A stretch of 64,000 nucleotides of DNA, from sequence record MZ475892.1, one strand, 5' to 3'. The notes beneath the pieces are model-generated. The model did not search any database and was not told where the DNA came from. It worked only from the letters and a program-made list of their open reading frames with translations. Below, piece after piece: positions 10,037 through 47,359 of the stretch (position 1 is the stretch's first letter; each line of letters opens with the position of its first letter). The position numbers and the translations under genes were made by a program.

Positions 10037-10082
10037 AGTTGCGAGCGCATTGCTCAATACAATCATGCTGAGGAGCATAACA

Positions 10083-10424
10083 ATGAACGCATCTACTTTC
10101 GATTTCTCTATCATCTGCACCGAGAGCTTCAACATTAACGAGCTGAACAAAATCGCCGTTGAGCTGAACAAGCTGATCACCAACTCGCAGATCAAAATTG
10201 AAGCCGTAGAGATTGATGATGAAGGCGCCGAGTGTATTCTTCTGGCTGTCGGTCTTGATGAAGACGGCGAAGAGACTGGCGACAACGGCTACTCCCTGCA
10301 TCTGGACAACGGCGACTATCAGATCGTATATCTCGGCGTGCCGCATCCTGACTTCGATAAGCACGAACTTGCGACCAGCGACTTTGAGTTGTTCATCAAA
10401 TCAGTGAACGGCCTTGAGTTCTAA
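10083..10424 (+). CDS. Hypothetical acidic protein
   Basis: GAGGAG RBS in a hairpin; first gene after the box promoter. Confidence 0.8.
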   Translation: MNASTFDFSIICTESFNINELNKIAVELNKLITNSQIKIEAVEIDDEGAECILLAVGLDEDGEETGDNGYSLHLDNGDYQIVYLGVPHPDFDKHELATSDFELFIKSVNGLEF

Positions 10425-10444
10425 TCACTAATCTGGAGTCTAGT

Positions 10445-10798
10445 ATGCGCCCTAACGCCGCAGCACATCTCGCCGCATCTCTTGCCTTGTTTGCGAAACG
10501 TAACCGTAGAGCAAAATTCACTATCTCTACAAAATCGATAATTCAAGCGACTGATATGGGGACTGGTGCCTATATACCTGATCTATTCATTATGCAATTA
10601 GACCTAGAGTTGCGTCTACGTGGTTACATCCTGATTAAACAGGAGGAGACAAACTACATGATAATGAAAGCTAGACCCCGCAATCATGGCCTTCGCATTT
10701 CTTCAAATCATATAGATGAATATATGAACCTGCCCCTTGAGGTAGTCGATCTTCAACTCTCTGAGGCGTTGGACACAGAAGACACAGAAGAAGACTAA
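10445..10798 (+). CDS. Hypothetical protein
   Basis: GGAG RBS. Confidence 0.65.
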   Translation: MRPNAAAHLAASLALFAKRNRRAKFTISTKSIIQATDMGTGAYIPDLFIMQLDLELRLRGYILIKQEETNYMIMKARPRNHGLRISSNHIDEYMNLPLEVVDLQLSEALDTEDTEED

Positions 10799-10850
10799 CA
10801 CTAATCTGGCAGAAATCGCCGTTGTGTTTAGACGCTCAACGGCATACTAT
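10798..10850 (+). promoter_or_regulatory. Box promoter 2
   Basis: ACACTAATC-TGGCAG-AAAT, 32-nt spacer, TACTAT. Confidence 0.55.
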
Positions 10851-10899
10851 TATGTCTCTAGCGCAATGACGCGCTACAACAACGAAAGAGAGAAACAAC

Positions 10900-11154
10900 A
10901 TGAGCGAAGACGTTAAAGTAACAATCGATTTAGTAGCTGACTTTGTATCACGCACCGAAGTTGTGTTTGAAGACGGTCAATCATCTAATGACTGGCTCGC
11001 GCCGTATGATCTGCGCCTGAACGTAACTGAGCCTCAAGGGCCGAACGGCTACCCCGAAGTTGAAATCGTCGGCCAGCGCGATAACGTCTTGCGCTTCTTT
11101 GATGAGCAGATGCCTGACAGCGACATTACAGAAGACTCGCTTGAATCTGCCTAA
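10900..11154 (+). CDS. Hypothetical protein
   Basis: 84-aa acidic ORF. Confidence 0.7.
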   Translation: MSEDVKVTIDLVADFVSRTEVVFEDGQSSNDWLAPYDLRLNVTEPQGPNGYPEVEIVGQRDNVLRFFDEQMPDSDITEDSLESA

Positions 11155-11213
11155 GCAACAAACAACACTGTGGCGTTACGGCACCACTTTTCTATTTCTG
11201 ATCTGAGGTCAAT

Positions 11214-11753
11214 ATGAAACAAAAATTCTTATTCTTGCGCATGAGCCGACACGAGCTGAATCAGCATTTGTTTTTACTTCGTGGCATGAGCCGTGAGCGT
11301 CTTGAATCATTTACTGGCATTATCGCCGTTGTCAAAGACGATACGACGATGGCGAACATCGATGATACTGACCTGTATTATTTCAGCGAAGTAACAGCCG
11401 AAGAGACAACATCAGAGACGCAACAAACCTGGTGGAACCTGATTCATTACTACGACAATCAGATTGCTATCGGCTCACTCCCACGTATAGAGCCGCTGCT
11501 GCCTGACGATTTAGTTGAGCGCATCAAAACAACTCGCAGCAATCGCTTCTACTACGAGTTCGATACGCAAATGCCAGAAGTGTTGGCCACTGTTGATCTT
11601 GACCTACACTTCTTGCCGTCTGCCGCTCAGCCTCGTGTGAAGAAGCCTAAAGAAGAACAGCCAGAAGTTAATCCCCTGGCCGCATACACAGTCGAACAAC
11701 TGTGTGCCGAACTGCGTACTCGCCTGAGTGCAAAAATCACTATCGAATTTTAA
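11214..11753 (+). CDS. Hypothetical protein
   Basis: GAGG RBS; 179 aa. Confidence 0.75.
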   Translation: MKQKFLFLRMSRHELNQHLFLLRGMSRERLESFTGIIAVVKDDTTMANIDDTDLYYFSEVTAEETTSETQQTWWNLIHYYDNQIAIGSLPRIEPLLPDDLVERIKTTRSNRFYYEFDTQMPEVLATVDLDLHFLPSAAQPRVKKPKEEQPEVNPLAAYTVEQLCAELRTRLSAKITIEF

Positions 11754-11794
11754 TCAACTAGCACAGGGACGTGCCTCTAACTGAGATCAAAACT

Positions 11795-12400
11795 ATGTTC
11801 ACCAAAGCATTCTTCTTCAAAACTAACTACTCTGTATTGGCCGAAGGTGAGTTCGCGCTGCCTGTTGACTCACTGACCTCTCTCGTCAACTCGCGTATTT
11901 TCATCTGCATCACAGAAGACAACCTGCGCTTCGCACTGACCAACATCACTGTGCAGCCGATTCGCAATGGCTTCTTGCGCGTTGGCTTCGAGCCGAAGAC
12001 TGACGTGAATGCAATCACTACTCCAATCATCACGCCTAAAACGATGTGGAGCGAATATGATTTTGATGCGTGCAGTGTTGAAAACATCCCGTCATTCAAT
12101 ATCAGTACGCATGAAGACAAGAACAACGAACAACTGATTGCACTGTCATATGACCTTCGTATGGCTCTCATGCATTATCGTGAAGGCATGTACTGCGTGA
12201 CCGACATCGTTTTGCGCCTGCATGAGCATGGCATCTTTGTCGTAGATATTGATCAGAATCTCAAGGTTGCTCTCTCGCCTATCGCCGTGCTTAGCGAACG
12301 ACCTACACATGCGGTCAGTCTGAGTAAAGACAACGGTGTGCTGTCTCGCATTGATGACTTCGAACTGCCTGATCTCGCCAAACTGATCGTCCTACTGTAA
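11795..12400 (+). CDS. Hypothetical protein (start uncertain, 11771 or 11795)
   Basis: Long co-directional ORF. Confidence 0.7.
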   Translation: MFTKAFFFKTNYSVLAEGEFALPVDSLTSLVNSRIFICITEDNLRFALTNITVQPIRNGFLRVGFEPKTDVNAITTPIITPKTMWSEYDFDACSVENIPSFNISTHEDKNNEQLIALSYDLRMALMHYREGMYCVTDIVLRLHEHGIFVVDIDQNLKVALSPIAVLSERPTHAVSLSKDNGVLSRIDDFELPDLAKLIVLL

Positions 12401-12452
12401 ACAAACAACTCTAGCCTCGCATCGTGCGGGGCTTTCTGCTTTGGAGAATACC

Positions 12453-12713
12453 ATGTATCAATATGACCGCGATGAATTGAATGATCTGCCGCTTGACGTG
12501 CTGCATAGCGAAGCTGAAAAGCGTGGCTTGCTCGCTGACCTGGACGACGATGATGATTGTCCTGACCGTGCAGTGCTGGTGGGCATGATCATTGATGATC
12601 AGAACGAGCGCAATGCCGAAGACGAAGAGGAAGAGCAGCGCCGTCAGATGCAAGATGACGCTGACGATCACCGTCGCATGTTAGACGAACGCGACGGCTC
12701 AGACGACTGCTAA
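12453..12713 (+). CDS. Small acidic protein with an HeH-like module
   Basis: GGAGA RBS; LNDLPLDVLHSEAEKRGL..DRAVLVGMI. Confidence 0.7.
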   Translation: MYQYDRDELNDLPLDVLHSEAEKRGLLADLDDDDDCPDRAVLVGMIIDDQNERNAEDEEEEQRRQMQDDADDHRRMLDERDGSDDC

Positions 12714-12714
12714 C

Positions 12715-13053
12715 ATGCTATACTCTGGGCAGCAATACGATACACTCAGTCCTGACCAGTTGAATGAGTGTTTCAATCTGATTGAAAGTTGCATGGTGGC
12801 CTCTGGCTGCCGTGGCTTTCAGATAGTGTTATCACCATCTGGTCATGGCGATTGTCGTAGCGTCGTCCACATTCAGCACCCACAGTATGCAGGTCACATT
12901 GAGTTCCCCTCAGTTGACCGTGATACTTTTCGTGTAACACTCGTCGCAACACGCGGTTGCTATGACAGCCGCACAGTGTTCGTACCAAATTCAGATACAG
13001 CCTATTCAGTGATAGGTCTGTATCTCTCAAACTTTATAGGGGCTACAAAATGA
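12715..13053 (+). CDS. Hypothetical protein
   Basis: Abuts its neighbours. Confidence 0.65.
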   Translation: MLYSGQQYDTLSPDQLNECFNLIESCMVASGCRGFQIVLSPSGHGDCRSVVHIQHPQYAGHIEFPSVDRDTFRVTLVATRGCYDSRTVFVPNSDTAYSVIGLYLSNFIGATK

Positions 13054-13394
13054 AACGCCGCGTTATTCGTATCGATCAGTCAGAGTTCAACGGTGAAGCG
13101 CTTGTCTTCCCACCATCATTCAACATCACCGGCATTGACGTTGTGGTGCTTGTGACCGTGAAGCACGAAGATTTCGGTGGCTTGAAGTTTCAAGATACCT
13201 ATCGTGTGAACGAACTACGTGTAAGCGAACATACAAATCCCCTGCGTCAGGAGATTGAGATCGTAGAGTACAGCAAACTGCCGAACGATGAAGCAATCTT
13301 CACACGACTACTCGACGTTGATTATTTCGACGACGACATTGCAGAGCGTGACCTGCGTCTGTACGATGCACCGACCACAATCGTCACTGCGTAA
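13050..13394 (+). CDS. Hypothetical protein
   Basis: ATGA overlap with the upstream gene. Confidence 0.7.
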   Translation: MKRRVIRIDQSEFNGEALVFPPSFNITGIDVVVLVTVKHEDFGGLKFQDTYRVNELRVSEHTNPLRQEIEIVEYSKLPNDEAIFTRLLDVDYFDDDIAERDLRLYDAPTTIVTA

Positions 13395-13402
13395 TAATCT
13401 TT

Positions 13403-13429
13403 AGGGCTGCCATCTTGGTGGCCCTTTTT
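13403..13429 (+). terminator. Intrinsic terminator
   Basis: AGGGCTGCCA-TCT-TGGTGGCCCT followed by TTTT. Confidence 0.8.
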
Positions 13430-13433
13430 GTTT

Positions 13434-13441
13434 TCTGTAAA
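13434..13441 (+). promoter_or_regulatory. TCTGTAAA motif
   Basis: Directly after a terminator and upstream of the next operon. Confidence 0.5.
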
Positions 13442-13477
13442 CTACACGCACAATCCCAACAATGCGAGAACGCACAG

Positions 13478-14756: not shown

Positions 14757-15055
14757 TCTACGAATGGGTCCACGACCTTGAAGGTAACGAAAGTCAGAAT
14801 CTGCCTATCTTGCCTCCAGACATTTATGCGTATGTGCGCGATGCCGTCACTGGCGCACGTACTCCAATCAACTTTGAAGGACGCACCGAGTTACAGCGTC
14901 AAGACAAGAAAGTCATAGGCGTTGTCTATTGGTCTAATCGAGCTAATCTGATTTCATGGACGGGCGTCGAGCGCTTTCGTTTTACGCTGTATGTAGTACG
15001 CGCCTCACGTAAGTCAAATGAGCAACAGGAGGAAGCTCAAGTCTGCACTAATTAG
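14744..15055 (+). CDS. Hypothetical protein
   Basis: Overlaps the upstream stop; its 3' end runs into box promoter 3. Confidence 0.5.
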   Translation: MGDIIYEWVHDLEGNESQNLPILPPDIYAYVRDAVTGARTPINFEGRTELQRQDKKVIGVVYWSNRANLISWTGVERFRFTLYVVRASRKSNEQQEEAQVCTN

Positions 15056-15097
15056 GCTGAAATAGCTATCGCGCATAATACGCTCCTGTGCTATACT
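15045..15097 (+). promoter_or_regulatory. Box promoter 3
   Basis: GCACTAATT-AGGCTG-AAAT, 32-nt spacer, TGC-TATACT. Confidence 0.6.
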
Positions 15098-15142
15098 CAT
15101 AGACGAAGCAACACATAATCTATTCACGCTAAGGAGCGTATT

Positions 15143-15574: not shown

Positions 15575-15639
15575 TTGCTTGCGGGTCTTTTACGAAGGGC
15601 CCGTCGTCAACAACACAAACCTGTTCTGAGGAGAACAAC

Positions 15640-15957: not shown

Positions 15958-16022
15958 GATTTGTGAAGGGCATTCGTTGCTGAGTGCTCTTTGAAAATCA
16001 ACCCTGTTCTGAGGAGAACAAT

Positions 16023-19951: not shown

Positions 19952-20355
19952 CTGAACAACGAATGAGTTATTGCGGTTCACGTTACATCCGTACATCTTC
20001 TGGCAGGTGGTATTTGCTTTTCGAACGAGCCGCCTGCTTGTGCATCAATCGTCATGGTACCCAGTACTGGCGAGCAGGTACGCAAGTGTGGAAGGATGTG
20101 TCTCTCTCAACTCGCGCCACTTTGGAGAACGAGTTTATCAGTCGTACCCGCAAAGATTTCAGGGAGTCGAAGTCTGCGTACAACAGATGGGGCAAGGTGA
20201 TTCGTACACTCATTCTAGGTGCAGGCACTAACGAGCATCTCCACGATTTAGCGTCGATTCTTGAGGCGCTGAGACAGACGCATATAGGGCGCAAGCAACA
20301 GCAACTGCGCACTACATTGGATGAAATAGCTATTCAGTCGAGAACTACCCTGTGA
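19948..20355 (+). CDS. Hypothetical protein
   Basis: ATGA overlap; its 3' end encodes box promoter 4. Confidence 0.6.
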   Translation: MTEQRMSYCGSRYIRTSSGRWYLLFERAACLCINRHGTQYWRAGTQVWKDVSLSTRATLENEFISRTRKDFRESKSAYNRWGKVIRTLILGAGTNEHLHDLASILEALRQTHIGRKQQQLRTTLDEIAIQSRTTL

Positions 20356-20361
20356 TATAAT
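20308..20361 (+). promoter_or_regulatory. Box promoter 4
   Basis: GCACTACAT-TGGATG-AAAT, 32-nt spacer, TGA-TATAAT. Confidence 0.7.
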
Positions 20362-20412
20362 AGCAGCGAACGCTAAACAGTCTCGTTTAGCTACTTACAT
20401 GAGGATATGTAT

Positions 20413-20514
20413 ATGATTAACAACTACTGCCCGTTTCGCGCTGTGATGTACCACGCTTCAATCATCCTTCTCGCCATTTGCTCTGGCGTTGTTTTAGCCC
20501 ACGCACATTTCTGA
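20413..20514 (+). CDS. 33-aa peptide MINNYCPFRAVMYHASIILLAICSGVVLAHAHF (below the ORF-track cutoff)
   Basis: GAGGA RBS 7 nt upstream; its stop overlaps the RBS of the radical SAM gene. Confidence 0.55.
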   Translation: MINNYCPFRAVMYHASIILLAICSGVVLAHAHF

Positions 20515-20525
20515 GGAGAATAATC

Positions 20526-21665
20526 ATGATGCGTAACTTCACGGCAATCCTGCCAGTAACCTGTAATGCCGATTGTTCATTCTGCCCTGAGAAAGAAATG
20601 GAGCAGAAAGCTACGAACCGCCAGTGGCTGACTAATCTCATTGCGCAGATTAATGACCATGCCGGTGAGTTCGACCACGTTTCAATCTCTGGTGGTGAAC
20701 CTACGCTCAAGCCAAAGTTCCTGTTTGAAGTGATCGATGCGATTCGCACTCAAACGGATATCGATAAAGTTGGACTCACGTCAAATGGTCGCTTCCTGAA
20801 TAAGCAAGACAGCATCTTCCAGTTCCTTGATCTGAACACAGACGACATGCTGGAAAGCAAGCTGTCCCATCTGAATATCAGCCGTCATTCATTCGACGAT
20901 GCCAAGAACAACGAGATCATGAAAGTGCGTTACACGTACACGCTTGATGACCTCGTGAAGTTTAGACGTCAACTCGGCACAAAGCTGAGCTTCCACATTA
21001 ACTTTGTTATCAACGAGCACAACATCGATAACATTGAGTGGGAGTTTGCACAGGCTAATCGATTCATGATGGAGAACCCGTGGATCGATGTAGTGTTCCG
21101 CGTTGACTACGCAAACGAAAAGCTGAATCGTCGTCTGCGTCGTTACGGCCTGTCTGTGCAAGCGTGGCGTGATGCAACTCGCGGCTCTATTCGTGATGAA
21201 CGCATAGCGCGTGAGAATCTGAAAAAGAAACCCAAACTTGTTCAGTTGTTCGACGGTGTATTCAGTGGTACAACACAGGACAATGACGGTACATTTACCG
21301 ATGCGTGTCCAAGCTGTTTCGTGCATCGCAGCCAGAAGATTCATAACAACCATGCGTGGCTCAAAGCATCCTCGTTCGAACCGAACGTAGACGAAGAGGA
21401 ATACACTGAGTACGTGTTCCACATGGACGGTGAGCTTTACTACGACTGGTCGCGTGCCGAGCCTGTGCCTGACGTAGAGAAGAAACCACGCAAACACAAA
21501 GCCATTCGCATTGTCCAGAAAAAAGCGGAAGAAGATGATATGGATGAAGACATGCCTGCATCTTCTCGTATGGGTTGTCAGTATAGAACTGTCGGATGTT
21601 CTTACGGTGAATCAGAATCTGCTGGTGGCTGTTCATTTAGATCTCCTGGCAGCTGTAGCTTTTAA
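20526..21665 (+). CDS. Radical SAM enzyme with a Cys-repeat C-terminal tail
   Basis: CNADCSFC (CxxxCxxC), ISGGEPTL, TSNG, NISRH; GAGGAG RBS. Confidence 0.88.
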   Translation: MMRNFTAILPVTCNADCSFCPEKEMEQKATNRQWLTNLIAQINDHAGEFDHVSISGGEPTLKPKFLFEVIDAIRTQTDIDKVGLTSNGRFLNKQDSIFQFLDLNTDDMLESKLSHLNISRHSFDDAKNNEIMKVRYTYTLDDLVKFRRQLGTKLSFHINFVINEHNIDNIEWEFAQANRFMMENPWIDVVFRVDYANEKLNRRLRRYGLSVQAWRDATRGSIRDERIARENLKKKPKLVQLFDGVFSGTTQDNDGTFTDACPSCFVHRSQKIHNNHAWLKASSFEPNVDEEEYTEYVFHMDGELYYDWSRAEPVPDVEKKPRKHKAIRIVQKKAEEDDMDEDMPASSRMGCQYRTVGCSYGESESAGGCSFRSPGSCSF

Positions 21666-28702: not shown

Positions 28703-28980
28703 TGCAGCACCGTCGTAAAGTAAAGGCCGAGTCAAAGCAACGTTCAATACCCGAAGACTGGCCTGTATTCAAAGACATGTTGCTGACGTTGCGCATCGCT
28801 GTACTCACGGACGAGAAGCCTCACGCTAAACTGCGTGCGCTTGCTCTCCAATGGTATACAGATGGGAAGTATCGTAACCCTGTCTGTGATTCTGTTCTGC
28901 TTAGGTTAACCGCTGAGAAACGACCTAAGCAAACTCTTGATCAATTGATCACTCTCTATAACTTTCTTGAGGAAGAATAA
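28702..28980 (+). CDS. Hypothetical protein
   Basis: TAATG coupling. Confidence 0.65.
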   Translation: MQHRRKVKAESKQRSIPEDWPVFKDMLLTLRIAVLTDEKPHAKLRALALQWYTDGKYRNPVCDSVLLRLTAEKRPKQTLDQLITLYNFLEEE

Positions 28981-28982
28981 AA

Positions 28983-30203
28983 ATGGCTATCATTTCCGCA
29001 GAAGAACAAGCGCGTCTGGATTCACTTGCTGCTATCGTAGCTAAGATGTGGGCACAAGGCGGCCCTGCTGTGCGTGATGCTCTGCGTTACGTTGCTAACC
29101 AAATGCTGAGCGACGAGCACTCATTCCTGTACGAAGAAGTGCCTGGCGTAACGCCTGACATTGAATCTGTCTACCACCATCTGAGCGATTTGCCACTGAC
29201 GGGTATGACCCGCATCGTGCGCAATCCTGACTTGATCAGCTCGCTTGAAGATCTGATGAACAAAAACGAGCGTGAGATCTTCGGCTCTGCCGTGCGTAAC
29301 AGCGCGTACACTATGTTCAAACTTTTACCCCAGAATGACAACGCTGTGTTCTGCCATCCAGGTAAAGGTGCTACCTCTCGCACCCAGCCGCGTCAGGTCG
29401 CTGAAAGACTGCATCGTGGTTTAAGCTACATGTTGTCCGTGCACGGTCTGGACTCGTATATCAAAAAGTCTGACAATCAAATTCGCTCTTACGGACATAC
29501 GCGCTTAGCCTCTCTGGTAATCGCAGTCGCAGTCAAAGGCGAACGCAGTGTTGCTACTCGCATCGTACCTCTGTGGTGTATGGACAAGCACACGGAAGAG
29601 GTGGGCACGATTGAACTTGATCAGGATATCCCGAACGATAAACCTGCTTACTCAACTGAGGTAGAAACTGATATCCAAGTTTGGCCGAAGTTTGAAGCAA
29701 AACAACTTAGAGATATCCTGCTCAAGCATGGGAATTATATCGAGTCTAAGCTGCGCGGCATGGACCGCGAAGAATTAGATGATACCTATGAAGCCTTCGT
29801 TGATGCGTACCTTAACAATACTCACGACGAGGGTGATGAAGACGAAGATGATGAGTGGGACGAAGAAGAGGATGAAGACGAAGAAGATGCCTTCTGTACT
29901 GAAATCCCTTCGCGCCTAGCTCTACCTATCGAACTGCCTATTGTTAATCTCGAACGTCCGAAGTTAGACGTTCGCCCAGGCATGCGTTTGAAGACCAAAA
30001 AGCCTAGACAGTCTCATATTCAGAATATTCTGATTGATCCAGTTTGGCACGCAGTTGACCCACAAGACGAGAACAATATTCATTATTTCAGTGTGTCTAT
30101 TGTTGCCCGTGATACTGTCGGTCATAAGGCTATTTCAGCTTCGCCGCTTGAAGCACTGACTATCTCCAACGTGCTGATGCAGATCGCTGAAACTAACACT
30201 TAA
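28983..30203 (+). CDS. Hypothetical protein with an internal D/E tract
   Basis: 406 aa; DEGDEDEDDEWDEEEDEDEED. Confidence 0.8.
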   Translation: MAIISAEEQARLDSLAAIVAKMWAQGGPAVRDALRYVANQMLSDEHSFLYEEVPGVTPDIESVYHHLSDLPLTGMTRIVRNPDLISSLEDLMNKNEREIFGSAVRNSAYTMFKLLPQNDNAVFCHPGKGATSRTQPRQVAERLHRGLSYMLSVHGLDSYIKKSDNQIRSYGHTRLASLVIAVAVKGERSVATRIVPLWCMDKHTEEVGTIELDQDIPNDKPAYSTEVETDIQVWPKFEAKQLRDILLKHGNYIESKLRGMDREELDDTYEAFVDAYLNNTHDEGDEDEDDEWDEEEDEDEEDAFCTEIPSRLALPIELPIVNLERPKLDVRPGMRLKTKKPRQSHIQNILIDPVWHAVDPQDENNIHYFSVSIVARDTVGHKAISASPLEALTISNVLMQIAETNT

Positions 30204-30248
30204 CTGGACAAAACAGCGCTTCTTAACGAGGCGCTTTTCTGCTATAAT
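30196..30248 (+). promoter_or_regulatory. Box promoter 6
   Basis: ACACTTAAC-TGGACA-AAAC, 32-nt spacer, TGC-TATAAT. Confidence 0.75.
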
Positions 30249-34494: not shown

Positions 34495-34525
34495 ACTTTC
34501 TCGCTGAATTTTTAAGGAAATTCCA

Positions 34526-35671
34526 ATGACTAATTCATCTCTGCCTTTCGTTTCTTGGTTCGAACGTGACAACTATTTTGATGACATGCTTGAGCGCCTC
34601 GATCTCAAACGTCTCTGGGGCTATGTTGAAAAGAACAACGTGGTCAACAAGACTAAATACAATCTGCCTAACCTCACTGCCTACCACACTACCGAGCACA
34701 TGAAAGAAGTTGCGTGCATCGCGTCCTCCCTACTGCACCGCGAGTCGAACCACGACTGGCAGATTCGTCTGATGGAATATCCGTTAGTCGTCGCGTGCCT
34801 TTTCCACGATATGAATCACAGTCTGGGTAAATATACTGATGACGTGAACATCAACCATGCGCTCGTTGCGTTTAATGACTATCTTAATAGCAAAGATGAG
34901 AATCAGGGCAACGACAAGCTGCTGTTTGAATATCGCGATCAGATCTGTGCGCTGATTCGTTGCACCCAATTCCCGTTCCATGACTCACGCAAGCCAACTA
35001 ACCTGATGGAGCGCTGCATTCGTGATGCGGATATTCTATACGGCCTGCAGGATGACGCAATGCCTGCTGTTGTGATTGGTCTACTGGATGAAGTGAACGT
35101 TCGTTTGGCTCCAGAAAGCAAATACTCCACCGCACAGTGGGTGGCAGGTCGCATTGAGTTCCTGTTGTCCTGTGAGATGTTCACCGAAACTGCTAACAAA
35201 ATCTTCTGTGATGCTCTCAGCACCAACAGTCCAAACTATCACGGAAATGTGCTGCAATCTTTCCTTGAGATGAAAGTGCGGCTGATCGATGTTCGTGCAG
35301 GTAAGTTACGTGGTGGCGATGTTATCTGGACAGACACAGAGAACGACTCAACCTATCGTCCACGCCAAATCAGAAACATCGGCAACGAAGCGCTGCCAGA
35401 CGTTAACGTGTATTTTACTGACGGTCAGGCTTGCGGCTATCGTAGCGGGGAGACCGTTCAGTTGCTGCCTAATACAGAGATGGTAAAGCTCGAAGACATT
35501 GTAGTTGGCGACATTATTCTTGAGCCTGCACAGGGTGAAGTGAAGCGCGATCTACATCGCATCGTAAACATCGCTAACGCCGGCCTGCACGAGAGCGTGC
35601 TTTATCTCGAAAATGGCGGTGTGTTTACGTCAGCGCCCAAAGGCCGTGTCTGTCGTGTAGTCAGCAAATAA
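34526..35671 (+). CDS. HD-domain phosphohydrolase with two C-terminal KOW/SH3-like repeats
   Basis: YHTTEH, LFHDMNH, IRCT, IRDADIL; C-terminal repeats LRGGDVI..FTDG and IVVGDII..LENG. Confidence 0.8.
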   Translation: MTNSSLPFVSWFERDNYFDDMLERLDLKRLWGYVEKNNVVNKTKYNLPNLTAYHTTEHMKEVACIASSLLHRESNHDWQIRLMEYPLVVACLFHDMNHSLGKYTDDVNINHALVAFNDYLNSKDENQGNDKLLFEYRDQICALIRCTQFPFHDSRKPTNLMERCIRDADILYGLQDDAMPAVVIGLLDEVNVRLAPESKYSTAQWVAGRIEFLLSCEMFTETANKIFCDALSTNSPNYHGNVLQSFLEMKVRLIDVRAGKLRGGDVIWTDTENDSTYRPRQIRNIGNEALPDVNVYFTDGQACGYRSGETVQLLPNTEMVKLEDIVVGDIILEPAQGEVKRDLHRIVNIANAGLHESVLYLENGGVFTSAPKGRVCRVVSK

Positions 35672-35716
35672 CTGGACGAAATAAGGCTACTCTGCTTAGG
35701 CTGCTTATGCTATAAT
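35664..35716 (+). promoter_or_regulatory. Box promoter 7
   Basis: GCAAATAAC-TGGACG-AAAT, 32-nt spacer, TGC-TATAAT. Confidence 0.75.
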
Positions 35717-35758
35717 ATGCGTGAGCAGTCATTTATCATATTCTCAAGGGAGAAACGT

Positions 35759-39414: not shown

Positions 39415-39711
39415 ATGTCTGAACAAACTCAATTGCCTGGCCAAGTCGTTATCGTTTGTGTTATGCAGGAATCTGATTCTTTCATGGGTCAGAAGTTTGA
39501 TGGCTATGTGTACTTGCTTAATCCAGAACACAAAGAGATGTTTGAACGTCACCTGCAGGCGCACAAAAGTCGTGAGAACTATTCACACATTATCAGCCAC
39601 GCTAATCACTATATAACTAGCACGGGCTTCGATGCGCTTCATGCTGCTATACGCAAAGATGCAAACAGACCCTGGCTGTGGTCAGATACTGATTACACGA
39701 TAACTGCATAA
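39415..39711 (+). CDS. Hypothetical protein
   Basis: GAGGT RBS. Confidence 0.7.
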   Translation: MSEQTQLPGQVVIVCVMQESDSFMGQKFDGYVYLLNPEHKEMFERHLQAHKSRENYSHIISHANHYITSTGFDALHAAIRKDANRPWLWSDTDYTITA

Positions 39712-39758
39712 ATCTGGACAAAATAGAGGTAGCTAGAAAAAGCTGCCCCTGATATACT
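39706..39758 (+). promoter_or_regulatory. Box promoter 8
   Basis: GCATAAATC-TGGACA-AAAT, 32-nt spacer, TGA-TATACT. Confidence 0.8.
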
Positions 39759-39786
39759 AAAAGCGTAGCTTGTGCTGCGCTTTTTT
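39759..39786 (+). terminator. Terminator overlapping the start site of box promoter 8
   Basis: AAAAGCGTAGC-TTGT-GCTGCGCTTTTTT. Confidence 0.65.
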
Positions 39787-39811
39787 ACTTTCTGTCTGAG
39801 GAGACAACAAA

Positions 39812-40267
39812 ATGAAACCAATCAAAGCAACTGAGGCTGATAAAGCGCTTCAAAACGAATGTATGGACGCTGTTGCTCAGTGTATTATCCTGAACACACC
39901 CGACTGGCGCGATGTAGCGATTGCAGGTTTGCGCCTGTATCTGGTTGCAGCAAAGATGAGCGGCGCGGAAATCCCGTGTATGCAATTCGAACATAACGGC
40001 AAGCCGTGCCGTTTGTCGTTCAAGATGAACCTTGTTGATGAAGGCGAAGAGTTCACTCCGAACGAAGTGAACCAAGCGCACCAGCAAGAAATGATCGAAT
40101 GCATTCTTGCTAAGACCGAAGCGCTCGGCGGTTACAGTTACTTTGATTTGTTCGTTTGCTCAGGCCGCCTATTTATGATTGGCTTCGACGGTATGGCCGA
40201 CACCGTTCCTGCTCTGATGTTCCGCTCAGACAAAAAGAACTACCGCGTTAACTTGATCAACGGATAA
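39812..40267 (+). CDS. Hypothetical protein
   Basis: GAGGAG RBS in a hairpin. Confidence 0.8.
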   Translation: MKPIKATEADKALQNECMDAVAQCIILNTPDWRDVAIAGLRLYLVAAKMSGAEIPCMQFEHNGKPCRLSFKMNLVDEGEEFTPNEVNQAHQQEMIECILAKTEALGGYSYFDLFVCSGRLFMIGFDGMADTVPALMFRSDKKNYRVNLING

Positions 40268-40460: not shown

Positions 40461-40898
40461 ATGAAATTTGATCAAGCACCAACGAAAGCACAACTCGTGC
40501 TGCTGGCCCTCGCTCTCGAATCCGTTCTCCTCTCTATGGAGAAAACGTTTATCAACCGTAATCTGCTGGAGCAGTTACTTGCGAAGTACGGCATCTCGTT
40601 TAACGATCTGAAAGAGTTGCGAGAGTACGGCGAAAAGCATTCCGCCATCGGTACCAGCGTTGCTCAAGTTATGGAGATAGCTGCCTTGCATGTGGCTCAT
40701 CTGAAAACAGAACCTGTGCCTGAATACAGTCAAGACGACCTTGATCTAATTCGCGTAGAATACGAGCCAATCGATACGTCTGTCCTACGCCAGGGCGCTG
40801 TGAATGATGGGGTTATCACAGTGCAGCAAGCAGCCACTTTTGAGCGCGATCAGATACTGACTGCTATTCTTGAGTACCGACTGCGCTCAGAAGCATAA
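40461..40898 (+). CDS. Hypothetical protein
   Basis: GAGGT RBS. Confidence 0.75.
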   Translation: MKFDQAPTKAQLVLLALALESVLLSMEKTFINRNLLEQLLAKYGISFNDLKELREYGEKHSAIGTSVAQVMEIAALHVAHLKTEPVPEYSQDDLDLIRVEYEPIDTSVLRQGAVNDGVITVQQAATFERDQILTAILEYRLRSEA

Positions 40899-40945
40899 AT
40901 CTGGACAAAATCGTGGTTGTAGCAAAAACCGTCCTATGTTATAAT
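40893..40945 (+). promoter_or_regulatory. Box promoter 9
   Basis: GCATAAATC-TGGACA-AAAT, 32-nt spacer, TGT-TATAAT; TTGTAG at the -35 position. Confidence 0.8.
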
Positions 40946-40951
40946 AGAGAT

Positions 40952-41071
40952 GTAGCGTAGACGTGAGGTATGCGCTATAAATTGAATGACGCGTTTTTGC
41001 TTGACTGTAAGGTAGCGGTATCTTACAGTCCTTTTTCAAGTGGCTTCGAAGTTTGAGGCTTCTTGCGAAAG
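40952..41071 (+). ncRNA. Candidate structured RNA / leader, copy 1
   Basis: GACTGTAAG-N10-CTTACAGTC-CTTTTT, plus a 5' GTGA-loop hairpin and a downstream hairpin. Confidence 0.45.
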
Positions 41072-41976: not shown

Positions 41977-42030
41977 GCACAAATATGGACAAAATAGTGG
42001 TAGCATCTAAAGCATGACCTGTGCTACACT
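41977..42030 (+). promoter_or_regulatory. Box promoter 10
   Basis: GCACAAATA-TGGACA-AAAT, 33-nt spacer, TGC-TACACT. Confidence 0.75.
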
Positions 42031-42036
42031 ATAGAT

Positions 42037-42120: not shown

Positions 42121-42149
42121 GCACAGACTGCCTGCGCTTTTGATAGACA

Positions 42150-42202
42150 GCATAAATCTGGACAAAATCATGGTTGTATCAGAATGCTGCCTGTCATACA
42201 CT
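42150..42202 (+). promoter_or_regulatory. Box promoter 11
   Basis: GCATAAATC-TGGACA-AAAT, 32-nt spacer, TACACT; TTGTAT at the -35 position. Confidence 0.75.
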
Positions 42203-42263
42203 TTAATGAGTCGAGCAATAGTGCTCGCAACAAACTAAATCCCAATACTGAGGAGTATTACAC

Positions 42264-43856
42264 ATGGCACGTTTCGAAACTAACACTAACCTGGTTGGCA
42301 AAACTATCGTCCTGCTGAACGGCACCAAAGCGAAGATTGAAGACGCTATCGTTTCTGGCTACAAAGTGAAAGGCCAGACCAAGCGCATCGCAACCCGTGA
42401 CGTTATCAAAGAGGGTGCGCACTTTAAAGAAATCGAGCGCACGCCGCTGAGCCAGCTGGAAGATACTGGTGAAGGTTATGTGAAGTTGAAAGAAGCCAAA
42501 GCTGCTTCTAAGAAAGCGCCTGCGAAAGACGCTAAAGCTACTGGCAAAAAAGCTGCGGCAAAAGACAAGCCTGCTAAGACCAGCAAAAAAGCTGCCGCTA
42601 AAGATAAGCCAGCGAAAGAGCAAGAGCCGAAAGTTCGCCGTAAGTCTGCGAAAGAGCAGGGCAACGATTATCAGGAACTCGCGCAGGCTATCATCAAAGG
42701 CGGTCGCCGTGCAGCGCCAGTTGAAATTGACAGCGTAGACGAAGCGCTGACCGATGCAATCGCTAAGCGTCTGACCGCTGTTGTCGAATCGTCTGAGATT
42801 GCGAAACTCGCCGCTGATAACAAAACGCCGATCGCTAACGCACTGACCGTAACTTACGGTGCTGAGTTTGCGACTGATGCAAACGTTGTGCAGATTACGC
42901 TGAACCTGCAATACGCTAAGCCGACTGCTGTTGAGTCTGCCGCTCCTACTCTGGAGAATGCCGAAGCAATCGCAATGCGTGCTGCTAAAATGGCCGCGCC
43001 GAAAGTGAGCGCTAAACTCAAGAAGGCAGTGCGTGAAGCATTCGATATTGAAACAGACCTTGAGCTGGGTACTGTGATTATGTCAGGCGATGATCAATTC
43101 GCTTACTACGGCGAAAGCGCGAAGCACGCTGGCAAAGCGCTGCTGTATGTTGTCGAAACTGACAAGTTCAAATCTGTCTTGGCCTCTACTCTGACCGACT
43201 ACGAACTGCCTGCTGATGAAGAAGCTGAGGCAGAAGAAGAGGAGGAAGAAGAAGAAGAGGAGGAAGAAGAACCCGCTGATGACTTCGACGACGAAGAGGA
43301 AGAAGATGCGGACGATGCAGATGATGCCGACGATGCTGATGGCGACGACGACGAATTCCAGTACGTTGCTGTAGGCGATGAACACTTTGCTCTGGTCAAC
43401 AAAAAGATCACAGCCAAGTATCACGATGCACTGGCTGAGCAATTCGGCGTTAGCACCGAAGCGCTGGTCCCAGGCTTAGTGTTGACCAACGGCGAGATCA
43501 CTTTCGCTTATCTGGGCAACGATAGCAAAGGCGGCCTGCTCGTTATCGACCTCGACGACGATGCGGACGAAGACGACAACGTTCTGGTCTACCCGAAAGC
43601 CGACGTTAAATCTCTGACCGACTTCTCTCCTGTGCTGGGTGATGCAGATGAAGAAGACGCAGACGATGCAGAAGAGACCGACGAAGAAGACGAAGATCAG
43701 GACGACGACTTCGAATTTGACGATGCGCCGACTGCCGACCTCGAAGATCTGTCCGACGATGAGCTGCGTGACCGCGCTGTTGAGATGGGCCTGACCACTG
43801 TACGCAAAGCTGACAAAATGAACGCCAAGCAACTGCGTGCGCTGCTGTCTGAATAA
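42264..43856 (+). CDS. Polyampholyte multidomain protein (K/A tract, two D/E tracts, repeated beta modules, C-terminal HeH-like module)
   Basis: 530 aa; GAGGAG RBS in a hairpin; low-complexity tracts are directly visible. Confidence 0.88.
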   Translation: MARFETNTNLVGKTIVLLNGTKAKIEDAIVSGYKVKGQTKRIATRDVIKEGAHFKEIERTPLSQLEDTGEGYVKLKEAKAASKKAPAKDAKATGKKAAAKDKPAKTSKKAAAKDKPAKEQEPKVRRKSAKEQGNDYQELAQAIIKGGRRAAPVEIDSVDEALTDAIAKRLTAVVESSEIAKLAADNKTPIANALTVTYGAEFATDANVVQITLNLQYAKPTAVESAAPTLENAEAIAMRAAKMAAPKVSAKLKKAVREAFDIETDLELGTVIMSGDDQFAYYGESAKHAGKALLYVVETDKFKSVLASTLTDYELPADEEAEAEEEEEEEEEEEEEPADDFDDEEEEDADDADDADDADGDDDEFQYVAVGDEHFALVNKKITAKYHDALAEQFGVSTEALVPGLVLTNGEITFAYLGNDSKGGLLVIDLDDDADEDDNVLVYPKADVKSLTDFSPVLGDADEEDADDAEETDEEDEDQDDDFEFDDAPTADLEDLSDDELRDRAVEMGLTTVRKADKMNAKQLRALLSE

Positions 43857-43878
43857 GTAACCTGTAGTTCTGAATACA

Positions 43879-43898
43879 TGCGGCTCGAAAGGGCCGCA
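43879..43898 (+). terminator. GC-rich hairpin without a U-tract
   Basis: TGCGGCTC-GAAA-GGGCCGCA. Confidence 0.5.
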
Positions 43899-43931
43899 CA
43901 CTGACAACAAAGTTGATTGAGGAATCACATT

Positions 43932-45218
43932 ATGTCAAACGCAAACAAAATTCTGCTTAACGCTCGTGTACGCCGCTTAGACGGTACTGTTACTTACATC
44001 AACAAAGTGAATGCTAACGGTTATAGCACCGATGCGAAAGGCCCGCAGATTCCTGTCAAGCGCATTGTGTTTGCAGGCAAGATGCTGAAAGAGATTGAAC
44101 AGCCCTTTGAGAAAGGCGAGCACGTCATTGTGCAGGGCGTTGCAGTGAAGCTGAACAAGCGCCAGCAACGTGAGCTTGCTGATGGCACTCTCGATGAGAA
44201 AGCGCTGCGTCCTGAGTTCGGTAAGCTGGCAGTGATTGACCCTGATACAGGCAAAGCAACTGACGGCAAGAAAGTGAAGCCAACCAAGTCTGATGCTAAA
44301 GCCCCGAAAGCTGGCGCGAAAGCAAGTCTGAAAGCAACGCGTGAGCACAACAAAGAGCCGAAGCGCAGTCGCAAACAGCACAAAGCTGAAACGAACGATC
44401 TCAAAGACAGTCTGGACATTATCGACGAACGCAAATCACCGAAAGCGTCTCTGATTGAACGTCTGGATGCAGCAATCGCCGAAGCGAAAACGAAAGCACG
44501 CCGTAAGCTGTTAGCCGAAACGTTCGACATGGACTGGGCTGATATTAAAAAGCATGGCGGTGCAGGTATCGTTAAGCAGCACGGCCGCAAGAACGCCCAG
44601 AAGTTTATTGATCGTCAGACAGTGCAGGTCGATAGCACAACGTTCATCAAACAAATGCCAGCGCCGCTCAAGCGTCTTATTCAGGACACTGAGTTGCGTC
44701 TCAATCAAAAGCAGATTGAGCAAGTGCTTGGTGCGCTGGGGCTTGATACGCAATTCTACGCAGTCGCCGTGCAGGAGCTGCTGGGCAAACTCAAACTGTC
44801 CATAGGCGGTCGCGTGATCGAAGGCGAAGTTGTTCGAAAGGAGAACACGCCGAAGCCAAAAAGGTTCGTACACGCTGAGGCGCTATATGCAGACAAGAAA
44901 GAAGCGAAACGCCGCGTAAGCAAAATGAAATATGCGCTGCTGATTCCGCCTACGAAAGGTCTGCCTGCGTTACGCATCCATCAGGCAGAGGCAAAGCAGT
45001 CACTCGCCGTTCTGCTGCACCTGAAGCCTGGGAACATCAAGCGTGGTCTGCTTGCGTATGACAACAAAGGCCGTGAGTATATGTATGTCGCTTGCGATAT
45101 GACGGGCCCTGTGTTCATCGATAAAGATAGCAACGAACTGGCGTTCACGTATGCCAATCTGATCGATAACTTCAAACTCAAAGCGCAGCCTGTGTCTGAA
45201 CTGGACGTGGCCGTATGA
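43932..45218 (+). CDS. Basic protein sharing N- and C-terminal modules with the 42264 protein
   Basis: GAGGA RBS in a hairpin; N-terminal L(D/N)GT..I.....GY.......I....I...G...KEIE shared with 42264. Confidence 0.82.
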   Translation: MSNANKILLNARVRRLDGTVTYINKVNANGYSTDAKGPQIPVKRIVFAGKMLKEIEQPFEKGEHVIVQGVAVKLNKRQQRELADGTLDEKALRPEFGKLAVIDPDTGKATDGKKVKPTKSDAKAPKAGAKASLKATREHNKEPKRSRKQHKAETNDLKDSLDIIDERKSPKASLIERLDAAIAEAKTKARRKLLAETFDMDWADIKKHGGAGIVKQHGRKNAQKFIDRQTVQVDSTTFIKQMPAPLKRLIQDTELRLNQKQIEQVLGALGLDTQFYAVAVQELLGKLKLSIGGRVIEGEVVRKENTPKPKRFVHAEALYADKKEAKRRVSKMKYALLIPPTKGLPALRIHQAEAKQSLAVLLHLKPGNIKRGLLAYDNKGREYMYVACDMTGPVFIDKDSNELAFTYANLIDNFKLKAQPVSELDVAV

Positions 45219-45601
45219 GAACTGAAATCATCGTAGCGGGAGTTCTCTCTCAACTTTACACGCGGCTGATTACGGCCGCTATAATGAAAGCGCATGTGTA
45301 TTACTCAGACCTTGCGCCGGTGGTATTCGGTGTGCAGCTTACCAAAGTCGGTAAGTCGCAGTATCAAGCGCTGTGGGATTTAGTAGCGCTGACGATGCAG
45401 ATGGACCACGCACACGGCCGACCGCCTGTTGCTGCTCTGTATGTGTCTCGCGCTAATGCATCAAAACGACCGCCGCAAGCATTCTTCGCTGAATACGAGC
45501 GGCTAACTGGTAAGCGACTCAATGACGACGACTGGGAAGAGTTAGTCGATGAAGTATGGGCAGCTTACTCTCCACCAGAAATCTGTCAGGAGCCGACATG
45601 A
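45215..45601 (+). CDS. Hypothetical protein, possibly winged-helix-like
   Basis: GRPPVAALYVSR...PPQAFF resembles a GRPxLSALVV..PG.GFF domain family. Confidence 0.55.
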   Translation: MRTEIIVAGVLSQLYTRLITAAIMKAHVYYSDLAPVVFGVQLTKVGKSQYQALWDLVALTMQMDHAHGRPPVAALYVSRANASKRPPQAFFAEYERLTGKRLNDDDWEELVDEVWAAYSPPEICQEPT

Positions 45602-46056
45602 AGAAGTTGAAAGCCGTAAAGGTTAAAATTAGCCGCGGTGGTTATAAGCCTTCTTCTAAGGAAGAGGCAAAGAAGCTGGTGGCAGAGTTTCTGCTCGGCA
45701 CCATCGGCATTAGCCCAACGCAAGTCAGTCAACAACTGCTGTTGAATATCACGAACTACAACTATTTGACCTCTGTTGCGTATTCTGGACGTTCTACAGA
45801 TTACAGCCAGGCGGCAGCGCACAAAACTGTAAAAGAACTAAATGAATTTTGTCGAAAGCATAAAATTCAACTGGGCTTGCTAATTATGCCCCACACGTCG
45901 GCGTCTGAATATGATGGTGACGTAATTGTTGCAATCCCGTGGGAGCATGTTAAGAACAATCCGCAAATCCAGTCTGCCGTTAATTCTCTGTTTGAATCGG
46001 TTGAAGCAGACGGCTACCCACAGTATGTGACTGATGCTAAAACAGTAGAGGGATAA
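45598..46056 (+). CDS. Hypothetical protein
   Basis: AGGAG RBS; ATGA overlap. Confidence 0.7.
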   Translation: MKKLKAVKVKISRGGYKPSSKEEAKKLVAEFLLGTIGISPTQVSQQLLLNITNYNYLTSVAYSGRSTDYSQAAAHKTVKELNEFCRKHKIQLGLLIMPHTSASEYDGDVIVAIPWEHVKNNPQIQSAVNSLFESVEADGYPQYVTDAKTVEG

Positions 46057-46057
46057 G

Positions 46058-47338
46058 ATGTTCTACGACTATGTATTCAACTTCGACGAGCGCCAGACGC
46101 TACTGTCGTTAGCGGAATCCAAGTATCTTCTTAAACGGGACATTCCCGAGTATCTTAAAAAGTCCAAACACGCAATTGAGATTCGTCACACTGTGACCAA
46201 TCGTGGACGCGAGCGCCGCTCAGGAACAATAACAACTCCTATCGTGCCGCGTATTCACACCCGTGATGTTATGCGCTTGCTTGATGATATTCGTGACAAC
46301 GCGACTTACAGCTCCTGCCAAAGTCTCGCTGAACTGTTTGAATTGGGCTTGGGCGTTCCGCGCCAGAAAGATATTGCTACTTACCTTCATGCTTATTCGC
46401 GTGAGCACGATAAGAAAGGTATCGGTATCAAGTATATCCGCAAGCTGGTGGTTGATTATCATCGTAAGCACCGTCGTAGTATGGCGGGCAGTCGCTGGTT
46501 AATGCCTGCTGCTTACACGGCCAATCTGCTGAACATGCAGAACTTCATTCATCTGAAAGAAGACGGCTACAAGGGTAAAGTCAAAACGCCAGACGGCATC
46601 CCTGTAGTCTTGATTTACCAGAGCACTGAATACGCGACTGGCGAGTTTACTCTGTGTGACGCATTCATGATTAGTCCGATGGGATATCCAATGCCGTTCG
46701 CACAGATTGCGCTGCGTCCCGAGTTCAAGGCTGTGCCTAAAACGTTTTGCTCCCAAGCTCTGCGTGGCAAAGGCATGTACTCAATGGTTCTCGGTATGAT
46801 TTACTGGGAGAAAGGTGATTCAGTCGAATTGACACGCGAAGTCATGGAGATTGATGACAACCAGTATCTCACGTTGCTCGATGATGAACGTTATGCTGAC
46901 CGCCGCTCTGATGAATATTCAGCGATGCTGGTCAAGCGTGAAGAGTTCCGTCGCAATCGTGACAAGTGGCAGTCAGTGATTGATAAGTACGGCCAGACAG
47001 TTCGAACCCTCAAGCCTGAGATTAGCGCTCGTCTTGATCGTGCTCGTCAGTTCTTCTACGACCGCTCCGAGTTCCTGAAAGAGTTCGAGTCTCAGGAGAA
47101 GCGTGAGAACACCCGCGCATCAAAACGTTTTGCTGTAGCGTCTGCGATGTTTGCTGCGATTGACTGTGGGACAATTGCTGATCGTCAGACCTACCTTGCA
47201 GTGAGCACAAAGATTGATAAAGTGCATGACATTCTCGGTAAGTGGGGATTCAACACTGTAAAATCTGTTAATGCTAGTTTGAAGAAGTCTCTTTTAACCT
47301 ATGACGAATCAGGCGTATCTCGCGTCTGGTCACTATAA
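46058..47338 (+). CDS. Hypothetical protein (426 aa)
   Basis: Long ORF. Confidence 0.8.
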   Translation: MFYDYVFNFDERQTLLSLAESKYLLKRDIPEYLKKSKHAIEIRHTVTNRGRERRSGTITTPIVPRIHTRDVMRLLDDIRDNATYSSCQSLAELFELGLGVPRQKDIATYLHAYSREHDKKGIGIKYIRKLVVDYHRKHRRSMAGSRWLMPAAYTANLLNMQNFIHLKEDGYKGKVKTPDGIPVVLIYQSTEYATGEFTLCDAFMISPMGYPMPFAQIALRPEFKAVPKTFCSQALRGKGMYSMVLGMIYWEKGDSVELTREVMEIDDNQYLTLLDDERYADRRSDEYSAMLVKREEFRRNRDKWQSVIDKYGQTVRTLKPEISARLDRARQFFYDRSEFLKEFESQEKRENTRASKRFAVASAMFAAIDCGTIADRQTYLAVSTKIDKVHDILGKWGFNTVKSVNASLKKSLLTYDESGVSRVWSL

Positions 47339-47359
47339 CCCTTATCTGAGGAGATAAAC

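Follow-up and report, generated by a model that had tools for sequence, protein, structure and literature searches.

Shine-Dalgarno sites within covarying RAGG-tetraloop hairpins in the jumbo Erwinia phage pEa_SNUABM_34

The jumbo phage pEa_SNUABM_34 (pEa34) infects Erwinia amylovora and has a genome of 264,306 bp. The stretch analysed here, referred to as the window, is 64 kb long and identical to positions 200307-264306 of record MZ475892.1, which form the final 64 kb of the genome. All of its annotated genes (96/96) lie on the + strand and all (96/96) are named 'hypothetical protein'; they are designated below by the window position of their start. Eleven of these genes carry a Shine-Dalgarno (SD) sequence whose core, RAGG, forms the tetraloop of a small predicted hairpin. 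RNA structure at ribosome-binding sites (RBSs) is usually described gene by gene, and mostly as inhibitory, whereas here a whole gene class in phages of about 260 kb, found in three genera and linked to one promoter type, has one compact design of an SD-core tetraloop on a gene-specific stem. No description of the SD tetraloop hairpin element was found in literature searches. Phages of this group are under development against fire blight.

Hairpins at eleven Shine-Dalgarno sites

Hairpins were defined as an RAGG tetraloop closed by a perfect Watson-Crick stem of at least 4 bp. The scan was exhaustive for both strands of the window, and SD position is expressed as the distance from the loop end to the ATG. 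Such hairpins are formed by 11 of the 394 RAGG sequences on the + strand and by none of the 256 on the - strand, and 11/11 sit 8-10 nt before an annotated ATG, with none elsewhere in the window. The ten hairpins listed in the initial annotation were all found at their positions, each 8-10 nt before the start of an annotated coding sequence, and its view of them as genuine SD sites is upheld; an eleventh (28964), which it had overlooked, is added here.

Five hairpins precede the first gene after a box promoter, a promoter class described below, as the initial annotation had also recognised. These are ATGCT-GAGG-AGCAT at 10065..10078 (+), with a predicted folding free energy at 37 °C (dG37) of -4.1 kcal/mol, before gene 10083 (113 aa, isoelectric point (pI) 4.1); ACGCT-AAGG-AGCGT at 15126..15139 (+), before gene 15143; TTCTC-AAGG-GAGAA at 35741..35754 (+), before gene 35759; TGTCT-GAGG-AGACA at 39793..39806 (+), before gene 39812; and AATACT-GAGG-AGTATT at 42244..42259 (+), before gene 42264, which encodes an acidic protein of 530 aa. 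The sequence TGTTCT-GAGG-AGAACA occurs twice, at 15622..15637 (+) before gene 15640 and at 16005..16020 (+) before gene 16023. The eleventh member, TTCTT-GAGG-AAGAA at 28964..28977 (+), belongs to gene 28983, while TGATT-GAGG-AATCA at 43914..43927 (+) and TTATCT-GAGG-AGATAA at 47342..47357 (+) precede gene 43932 (428 aa, pI 9.9) and gene 47360 (1001 aa, pI 4.1), respectively. The weakest hairpin, TTCT-GAGG-AGAA at 20509..20520 (+), has a stem of 4 bp and a dG37 of -0.9 kcal/mol and precedes gene 20526, which encodes a radical S-adenosylmethionine (SAM) protein. Its membership of the class is doubtful: the hairpin is not conserved, and the orthologs of gene 20526 are N-terminally longer.

The class consensus is a 5-bp stem (range 4-7 bp) with a 4-nt loop, GAGG or AAGG, and predicted dG37 values extend from -0.9 to -5.1 kcal/mol. 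The tetraloop and the two bases that open the 3' arm together make up the six-base SD, RAGGAG, and the stem ends 2-5 nt before the ATG. This long SD is present at 8/11 sites; the SD contains GGAG at 8/11 sites, GGAA at 28964 and 43914, and GGGAG at 35741.

Stem lengths at the 52 SD-positioned RAGG of the window are bimodal, with 0-3 bp at 41 sites, 4 bp at one and 5-6 bp at ten. The initial annotation had made its case depend on how often such hairpins occur relative to shuffled SD flanks. When the 5' arms were permuted among the 52 sites, which preserves position-specific composition, stems of at least 4 bp arose at a mean of 0.65 sites, with a maximum of 6 in 20,000 permutations, against the 11 observed in the window. 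For stems of at least 5 bp the mean was 0.37 and the maximum 4, against 10 observed. Furthermore, swapped (non-cognate) 5' and 3' arms reach 5 bp only between the two identical hairpins. For genome-wide tests the whole MZ475892.1 record was reassembled from its annotated pieces, and the tests were run with the deposited gene starts or without any. In the whole pEa34 genome, hairpins are present at 13/247 SD-positioned RAGG (5.3%) versus 8/2677 other RAGG (0.30%).

Four general explanations for the hairpins were rejected. A general excess of RBS hairpins is ruled out, the excess being limited to the GAGG/AAGG tetraloop class: 16 RBS hairpins are observed versus 7.5 expected, 10/16 belong to this class and the remainder stay at background. 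Among hairpins with GG in the loop near start codons, only GAGG and AAGG tetraloops recur, and other loops are singletons, as they are in control genomes. Copies of one untranslated region (UTR) on paralogous genes are ruled out by the lack of blastp similarity among the 11 products. A general property of SD sites is ruled out by background-level frequencies in the phages PaBG and T4 and in E. coli, and hairpin-free strong SDs elsewhere in pEa34 rule out SD strength as the cause (numbers for both are given below). Stems vary from gene to gene and the 11 products are not paralogous overall, so it is the pairing itself that is kept.

The hairpins are concentrated in one part of the genome, 11/13 SD-positioned hairpins of pEa34 falling at 210-248 kb of the 264-kb genome. 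The remaining two lie outside the window at record positions 148466 and 147637, belong to minus-strand genes and have no counterparts in relatives. This pair reads TCTTTT-AAGG-AAAAGA and AAGT-AAGG-ACTT; about one 4-bp hairpin is expected by chance genome-wide, whereas a 6-bp AT-rich minus-strand hairpin is less expected. The same pattern is found in the same genome region in three related genera, with hairpins at 9/264 sites in Alexandra, 11/238 in Y3 and 8/210 in Yoloswag, counted over whole genomes.

Ortholog starts were located by tblastn in Alexandra, Y3, Yoloswag, AD1 and SNUABM_30 (SNU30), as well as in 18 IMG/VR loci; the latter came from an alignment-based scan, a single-protein query having matched only one near-identical genome. 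Four stems are essentially invariant across genera, namely ATACT/AGTAT (g42264), TGATT/AATCA (g43932), TATCT/AGATA (g47360) and ACGCT/AGCGT (g15143), at genes whose proteins are 28-60% identical and whose leaders just upstream are 39-55% identical. The ATACT/AGTAT core of g42264 and the TATCT/AGATA core of g47360 are each unchanged in 15 loci. The g43932 hairpin is kept in Alexandra, Y3, AD1 and SNU30 and absent in Yoloswag, and Alexandra and Y3 have exactly the g15143 stem of pEa34, with GAGG instead of AAGG as the loop. In a metagenomic g42264 ortholog of 35% identity, the corresponding hairpin is TATTTCT-TTGG-AGAAATA, with 7 bp; its register is unchanged, GG occupying loop positions 3-4 and AG being paired.

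Other stems have changed on both sides. The TGTTCT/AGAACA stem of g15640 is replaced by TAAGCT/AGCTTA in Alexandra and Y3 and by TAGCT/AGCTA in Yoloswag, with an intermediate containing a C.A mismatch in SNU30. The stem of g16023, also TGTTCT/AGAACA in pEa34, becomes ATGCT/AGCAT in Y3 and TAAGCT/AGCTTA in AD1 and SNU30 and is broken in Alexandra. At g39812, TGTCT/AGACA corresponds to AGTCT/AGACT in Y3, where the outer pair is flipped, and to CTGTCT/AGACGG, with a G.U pair, in Yoloswag; the TTCTT/AAGAA stem of g28983 corresponds to CCTT-GAGG-AAGG in AD1 and SNU30. The g35759 hairpin is specific to pEa34 and missing from the orthologs. Conversely, AACAG-GAGG-CTGTT, TGCC-AAGG-GGCA and CGTCT-GAGG-AGACG are members found in relatives but not in pEa34.

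Over 48 orthologous sites, of which the 11 pEa34 rows were selected for pairing and the 37 ortholog rows were not, 81.6% of stem cells are paired versus 53.9% after shuffling, and 0/500 shuffles reach 81.6%. The covariation score of these 48 sites is 0.658, compared to 0.189 for shuffled arms and 0.08-0.17 when the partner column is slid, with a consensus stem of 5 bp. Of about 209 paired cells, only 3 are G.U. In addition, RNAalifold recovers the SD hairpin in the 5' UTR of g42264, together with a second covarying hairpin at the 5' end. Compensatory pairing thus exceeds both the shuffled and the slid controls, which is the generic mark of a conserved cis-regulatory RNA structure. The statement of the initial annotation that the outer pairs vary and yet always pair is therefore borne out by the 5'-arm permutation, the non-cognate arm test and the ortholog covariation. 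Judged from sequence comparison, the SD tetraloop hairpins are a real, statistically strong, conserved and covarying RNA motif and a putative lineage-specific translation signal.

Box promoters and leader architecture

The box promoter is an element of about 52 nt with the consensus CAnnAAnnTGGAnnAAATA...CCTnTGnTATAnT and an extended -10. Its upstream part is a TCTGGACAAAAT-like box and its extended -10 is CCTnTGnTATAnT. Eight copies are present in the genome, all on the + strand and all in this genome part, at 9985..10036 (before gene 10083), 15046..15097 (gene 15143), 20310..20361 (20413/20526), 30197..30248 (gene 30315), 35665..35716 (gene 35759), 39707..39758 (gene 39812), 40894..40945 (gene 41155) and 42151..42202 (gene 42264). 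The -10 hexamers span window positions 10031-42197, and TGn precedes the -10 in 7/8 copies. A scan for canonical sigma70 -35/-10 promoters did not pick up the box promoters and showed no promoter cluster. The same promoter class is found in the same region of the relatives Alexandra, Y3 and Yoloswag. Extended -10 promoters are usable by host sigma70 without a -35 element, and we infer that the box-promoter genes are probably an early, host-sigma70 class.

Among the eight first cistrons after box promoters, five have the canonical hairpin, one has a hexaloop variant and two, genes 30315 and 41155, have no SD hairpin. Hairpins are enriched at these first cistrons compared to other genes (5/8 vs 6/64, Fisher p = 0.0015). 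The gene at the position equivalent to 41155 in relatives carries the AACAG-GAGG-CTGTT hairpin. The possible hexaloop variant, TACAT-GAGGAT-ATGTA at 20396..20411 (+), precedes a 33-aa open reading frame (ORF) at 20413, the first ORF downstream of the box promoter at 20356. Another possible hexaloop variant, GAATTT-TTAAGG-AAATTC, is found at 34506..34523 (+) before gene 34526.

Several leaders contain a further hairpin upstream of the SD hairpin. One, at 42210..42228 (+), lies where the 42264 mRNA is predicted to begin; it covaries across relatives, has the loop AATAGT/AATAAC and is followed by a G-poor single-stranded leader and then by the SD hairpin. Directly after the -10 of the 39812 promoter, a terminator-like hairpin with a T-run is present at 39759..39784 (+), which covaries in Yoloswag and could serve both to stop transcripts arriving from upstream and to cap the new mRNA at its 5' end. 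The operon-internal members 15640, 16023 and 43932 are each preceded by a stable GC-rich intergenic hairpin, located at 15581..15604 (+) and 15965..15992 (+), respectively, for the first two, each upstream of a leader and the SD hairpin. For gene 43932 it is a GAAA-loop hairpin at 43879..43898 (+), followed by a G-poor leader, upstream of the SD hairpin at 43914. From the promoter leaders and the operon-internal sites together, a repeated module therefore emerges, consisting of a stable hairpin, a G-poor single-stranded leader of 10-20 nt, the SD hairpin and the ATG.

About 60 nt beyond the box promoter that has its -10 at 40940, and well before gene 41155, there is a strong terminator-like hairpin (41003-41030) with a T-run. 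The region 40946-41035 could encode a short non-coding RNA or act as an attenuator.

Proposed exposure of the SD core and alternative explanations

Unpaired probabilities were calculated in the context -60..+40 at 28 °C. For the RAGG core this probability is 0.77 natively; shuffling the 5' arm lowers it to 0.38, and it is 0.39 for 39 other genes with an RAGG SD. Such predictions are only indicative for hairpins of 14-16 nt. The minimum free energy fold in context includes the hairpin at 9/11 sites. We tentatively favour a cis-acting RNA module that holds the SD core exposed in a weak, meltable hairpin, a reading that is plausible but far from assured. The hairpin would work in cis on the mRNA, folding fast and locally so that the RAGG core is left unpaired at its tip, and the purine-rich SD would thereby be spared from trapping by other pairings with the 5' UTR or the coding region. 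The G-poor leader of 10-20 nt between the stable upstream hairpin and the SD hairpin could serve as a landing (standby) site for the 30S subunit, and the stem, at a dG37 of about -1 to -5 kcal/mol, may be weak enough to melt as the anti-SD pairs. De Smit and van Duin reportedly found that a hairpin at the RBS hardly lowers initiation if it is weaker than about -6 kcal/mol. The outcome would be that de novo initiation is dependable where a cistron cannot count on translational coupling, namely at the first cistrons after the extended -10 phage promoter and at those behind stable intergenic hairpins.

Such a cis-acting module agrees with work in which a strong unpaired SD docks the mRNA on the 30S subunit while S1 melts structure (PMC3858243), and in which RBS structure is offset by single-stranded standby regions (PMC5934652, PMC7708055). 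The hairpins would form in vivo and may raise or stabilise initiation. If the element acts in cis, its 5' hairpin, standby leader and SD hairpin would together be a naturally occurring and portable 'insulated RBS' module, open to reuse.

Several observations weigh against exposure of the SD core as the function of the hairpin. The next two SD bases are paired, their unpaired probability being 0.07 natively and 0.29 with a shuffled 5' arm. Full pairing of a 4-nt loop with the anti-SD requires the stem to open, so that on balance the hairpin could leave initiation unaffected or reduce it. The loop is, moreover, more uniform in size and sequence than display alone needs. Among the 37 SD-positioned RAGGAG of pEa34, only the 8 within 210-248 kb are in hairpins, and 28 others, outside this region, have none. 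Finally, the frequency is at background level (0.2-0.5%) in the distant relative PaBG (1/286), in T4 (1/162, the sole match being located inside segD) and in 220 kb of E. coli (1/122), and this lineage restriction counts against the module because a generic benefit of SD display should not be confined to one lineage.

The element belongs with the known structured translation initiation regions. T4 has inhibitory structures at e, soc, 49 and I-TevI and spacing-correcting structures at genes 25 and 38, which are likewise initiation-region hairpins that set translation efficiency and are kept among related phages (PMC3014915). At e, soc, 49 and I-TevI, however, the SD and/or the AUG is sequestered by a 5' strand that is present only in upstream-started transcripts. 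Here the 5' arm lies downstream of the promoter -10 and is thus in all transcripts, the stem does not include the AUG, and pairing takes up only two bases of the SD. In the split RBS of genes 25 and 38 the hairpin lies between SD and AUG and corrects too long a spacer, whereas here the SD is in the loop and the spacing is already normal, at 8-10 nt in the unfolded state. The T4 structures are also one-gene devices, unlike the multi-gene family described here. The standby architecture of MS2 coat and tisB shares a single-stranded region with 5' structure upstream of a structured RBS (PMC5934652, PMC7708055), but there the RBS structure is strongly inhibitory, while here it is weak and the SD core is unpaired.

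The main alternative, although rather unlikely, is that the hairpin is an operator for a trans-acting factor of this phage lineage, an RNA-binding protein or endonuclease recognising the SD tetraloop hairpin. Such a factor would see the uniform loop and the inner C-G/U-A pairs, leaving the outer stem free to vary, and would switch the promoter-defined gene class off or on, or cut within GGAG as T4 RegB does in early mRNAs. This would account for a class that is limited to a lineage and a genome region without tracking SD strength and is tied to one promoter class. It would also fit the loop, which is nearly always GAGG and fixed at 4 nt, and the invariance of both arms in orthologs with divergent proteins (43-60% identity) and leaders (39-55%). 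However, the conservation of the loop is already explained by the loop being the SD. No match to RegB, RegA, CsrA, S1, S21, ParE/RelE, RNase III or a cold-shock domain (CSD) was obtained with Pfam in pEa34, Alexandra, Y3 or Yoloswag, the RegB endonuclease family PF10715 giving no match at E <= 10 in the pEa34 record, and the candidate g39812 is not RegB/RelE-like.

The sites resemble the T4 RegB targets in being GGAG-type SDs of a putatively temporal gene class that are intergenic and followed by an A-rich spacer. Their geometry is furthermore near that of the S1-independent RegB substrate, in which GG is unpaired and the last G constrained (PMC3014915), provided that the closing U-A pair frays. 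On the other hand, T4 RegB sites are unstructured and structure protects them from cleavage (PMC3014915), whereas the sites described here are predicted hairpins. The RegB 3' consensus GGAGRAYARAA is matched at 4-10 of 11 positions (mean about 7.8), a level similar to that of 24 non-hairpin GGAG SDs (7.3).

Operators with an identified protein offer another comparison. The coat-protein operators of MS2, Q-beta and PP7 at the replicase RBS and the operator of T4 gp43 are likewise small RBS hairpins with a defined loop and a covariable stem, but they occur once per genome and are bound by an identified protein, whereas here there are 11-13 copies and no known binder. Iron-responsive elements share the use of one hairpin design with a constant loop and covarying stems in many mRNAs, an analogy of logic only; a difference is that the SD, which is known to partner with 16S rRNA, itself forms the constant loop in the phage hairpins.

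If the element is read by a factor, this would be a new phage system for timing translation, with a role comparable to that of T4 RegB or RegA. In the more specific form of a post-transcriptional regulon, which we consider unlikely, a putative phage repressor or a RegB-unrelated, structure-specific endonuclease would read the GAGG-tetraloop SD hairpin and shut off or selectively spare a promoter-defined and probably early class of mostly very acidic products in the course of infection. Under either reading, a set of mostly very acidic proteins without known function is marked as one co-regulated, possibly early class. The initial annotation had put forward two mechanisms, an SD structure read by a phage regulator or nuclease and a tuned element for SD display. 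The structured element itself is real, and the part invoking a regulator or nuclease gained no direct support. Display is favoured by the predicted folding, with RAGG unpaired at 0.77 versus 0.38 and with weak stems, whereas recognition by a factor is favoured by the restriction to a lineage and genome region and by the uniform loop; sequence analysis cannot separate the two.

It is improbable that the hairpins act as attenuators or thermosensors, lowering initiation at very strong SDs or making it depend on temperature so that the output of the gene class fits the host's range of 15-30 °C. In favour of such a role, two SD bases are paired, 8/11 sites have the long SD, and 5-6 bp stems are predicted to be more stable at 28 °C (about -5 to -6 kcal/mol) than at 37 °C (about -4 kcal/mol). 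Nevertheless, in fourU and ROSE thermometers the SD is paired, usually with U-rich partners, while here its core is predicted to lie unpaired in the loop. Strong RAGGAG SDs elsewhere in the genome are without such attenuation, and stabilities that span -0.9 to -5.1 kcal/mol give no common set point.

Binding by RsmA (CsrA), a global regulator of the host that recognises GGA in SD-overlapping hairpin loops, is very improbable. Erwinia and Dickeya have RsmA, and at each site an A(N)GGA overlaps the SD in a short hairpin that displays its GG. The register is wrong, however, as the initial annotation had noted in stating that the loop does not fit the CsrA consensus. The CsrA optimum from SELEX, RUACARGGAUGU, is an RGGA tetraloop closed by A-U, whereas here the GGA is shifted by one base, so that the loop is RAGG and the A, the first base of the 3' arm, forms the closing pair with U. 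CsrA dimers usually bridge two sites, while 10/11 leaders have a single GGA within -60..+30. In addition, the class is lineage-specific although CsrA is widespread, and it is absent from T4, E. coli and PaBG, though their hosts have CsrA/Rsm. There is no CsrA homolog in pEa34, Alexandra, Y3 or Yoloswag, and an Rfam search of both strands of the 64-kb window gave no match at the gathering score and no Csr/Rsm-type RNA.

A DNA-level palindrome, or a functionless by-product of a pyrimidine-rich tract meeting the purine-rich SD region or of duplicated cassette copies, can hardly be credited: nearly all pairs are Watson-Crick, the 5' arms are pyrimidine-rich and the 3' arms purine-rich, and sites 15622 and 16005 are identical, but the position relative to the ATG is fixed on the coding strand with none on the other strand, the arms differ among sites and so offer no common DNA-binding site, composition-keeping permutation falls far below the observed number, orthologs show compensatory changes and the products are not paralogous overall.

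Gene products and neighbouring genes

The products of 10/11 hairpin genes are acidic, most with a pI of 4.1-5.9, and that of g43932 is basic. Acidity is extreme (pI 4.1-4.8) for g10083, g15143, g42264, g47360 and g28983, reminiscent of early host-takeover or DNA-mimic proteins. Searches of the hairpin-gene products against PHROGs, Pfam, PDB sequences and the ESM Atlas were uninformative apart from assigning radical SAM to g20526. The RegB-sized product of g39812 (151 aa, 39812-40267), considered as a candidate nuclease and rejected, has a confident AlphaFold (AF2) model with two helix-helix-strand-strand units (predicted local distance difference test (pLDDT) 89.8, predicted template modelling score (pTM) 0.86), for which Foldseek found no fold match in the PDB (best E = 0.45).

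The products of g42264 and g43932 (42264-43856 and 43932-45218) have a distant N-terminal domain of about 56 aa in common, with 27% identity and a pairwise E = 9e-5. The very acidic g42264 protein contains a lysine-rich stretch and long poly-Glu/Asp tracts and has a SAP/Rho_N-like C-terminal end.

The g20526 protein (379 aa; region 20413-21665) aligns from residue 2 to the interior of its 531-aa Alexandra ortholog and is preceded by the 33-aa ORF; in pEa34 the gene may be split or lack an N-terminal part. In the syntenic Alexandra region (209000-258999), an annotated RNA 2'-phosphotransferase (gp275) lies beside genes of no assigned function, a hint that this block of genes includes RNA repair functions.

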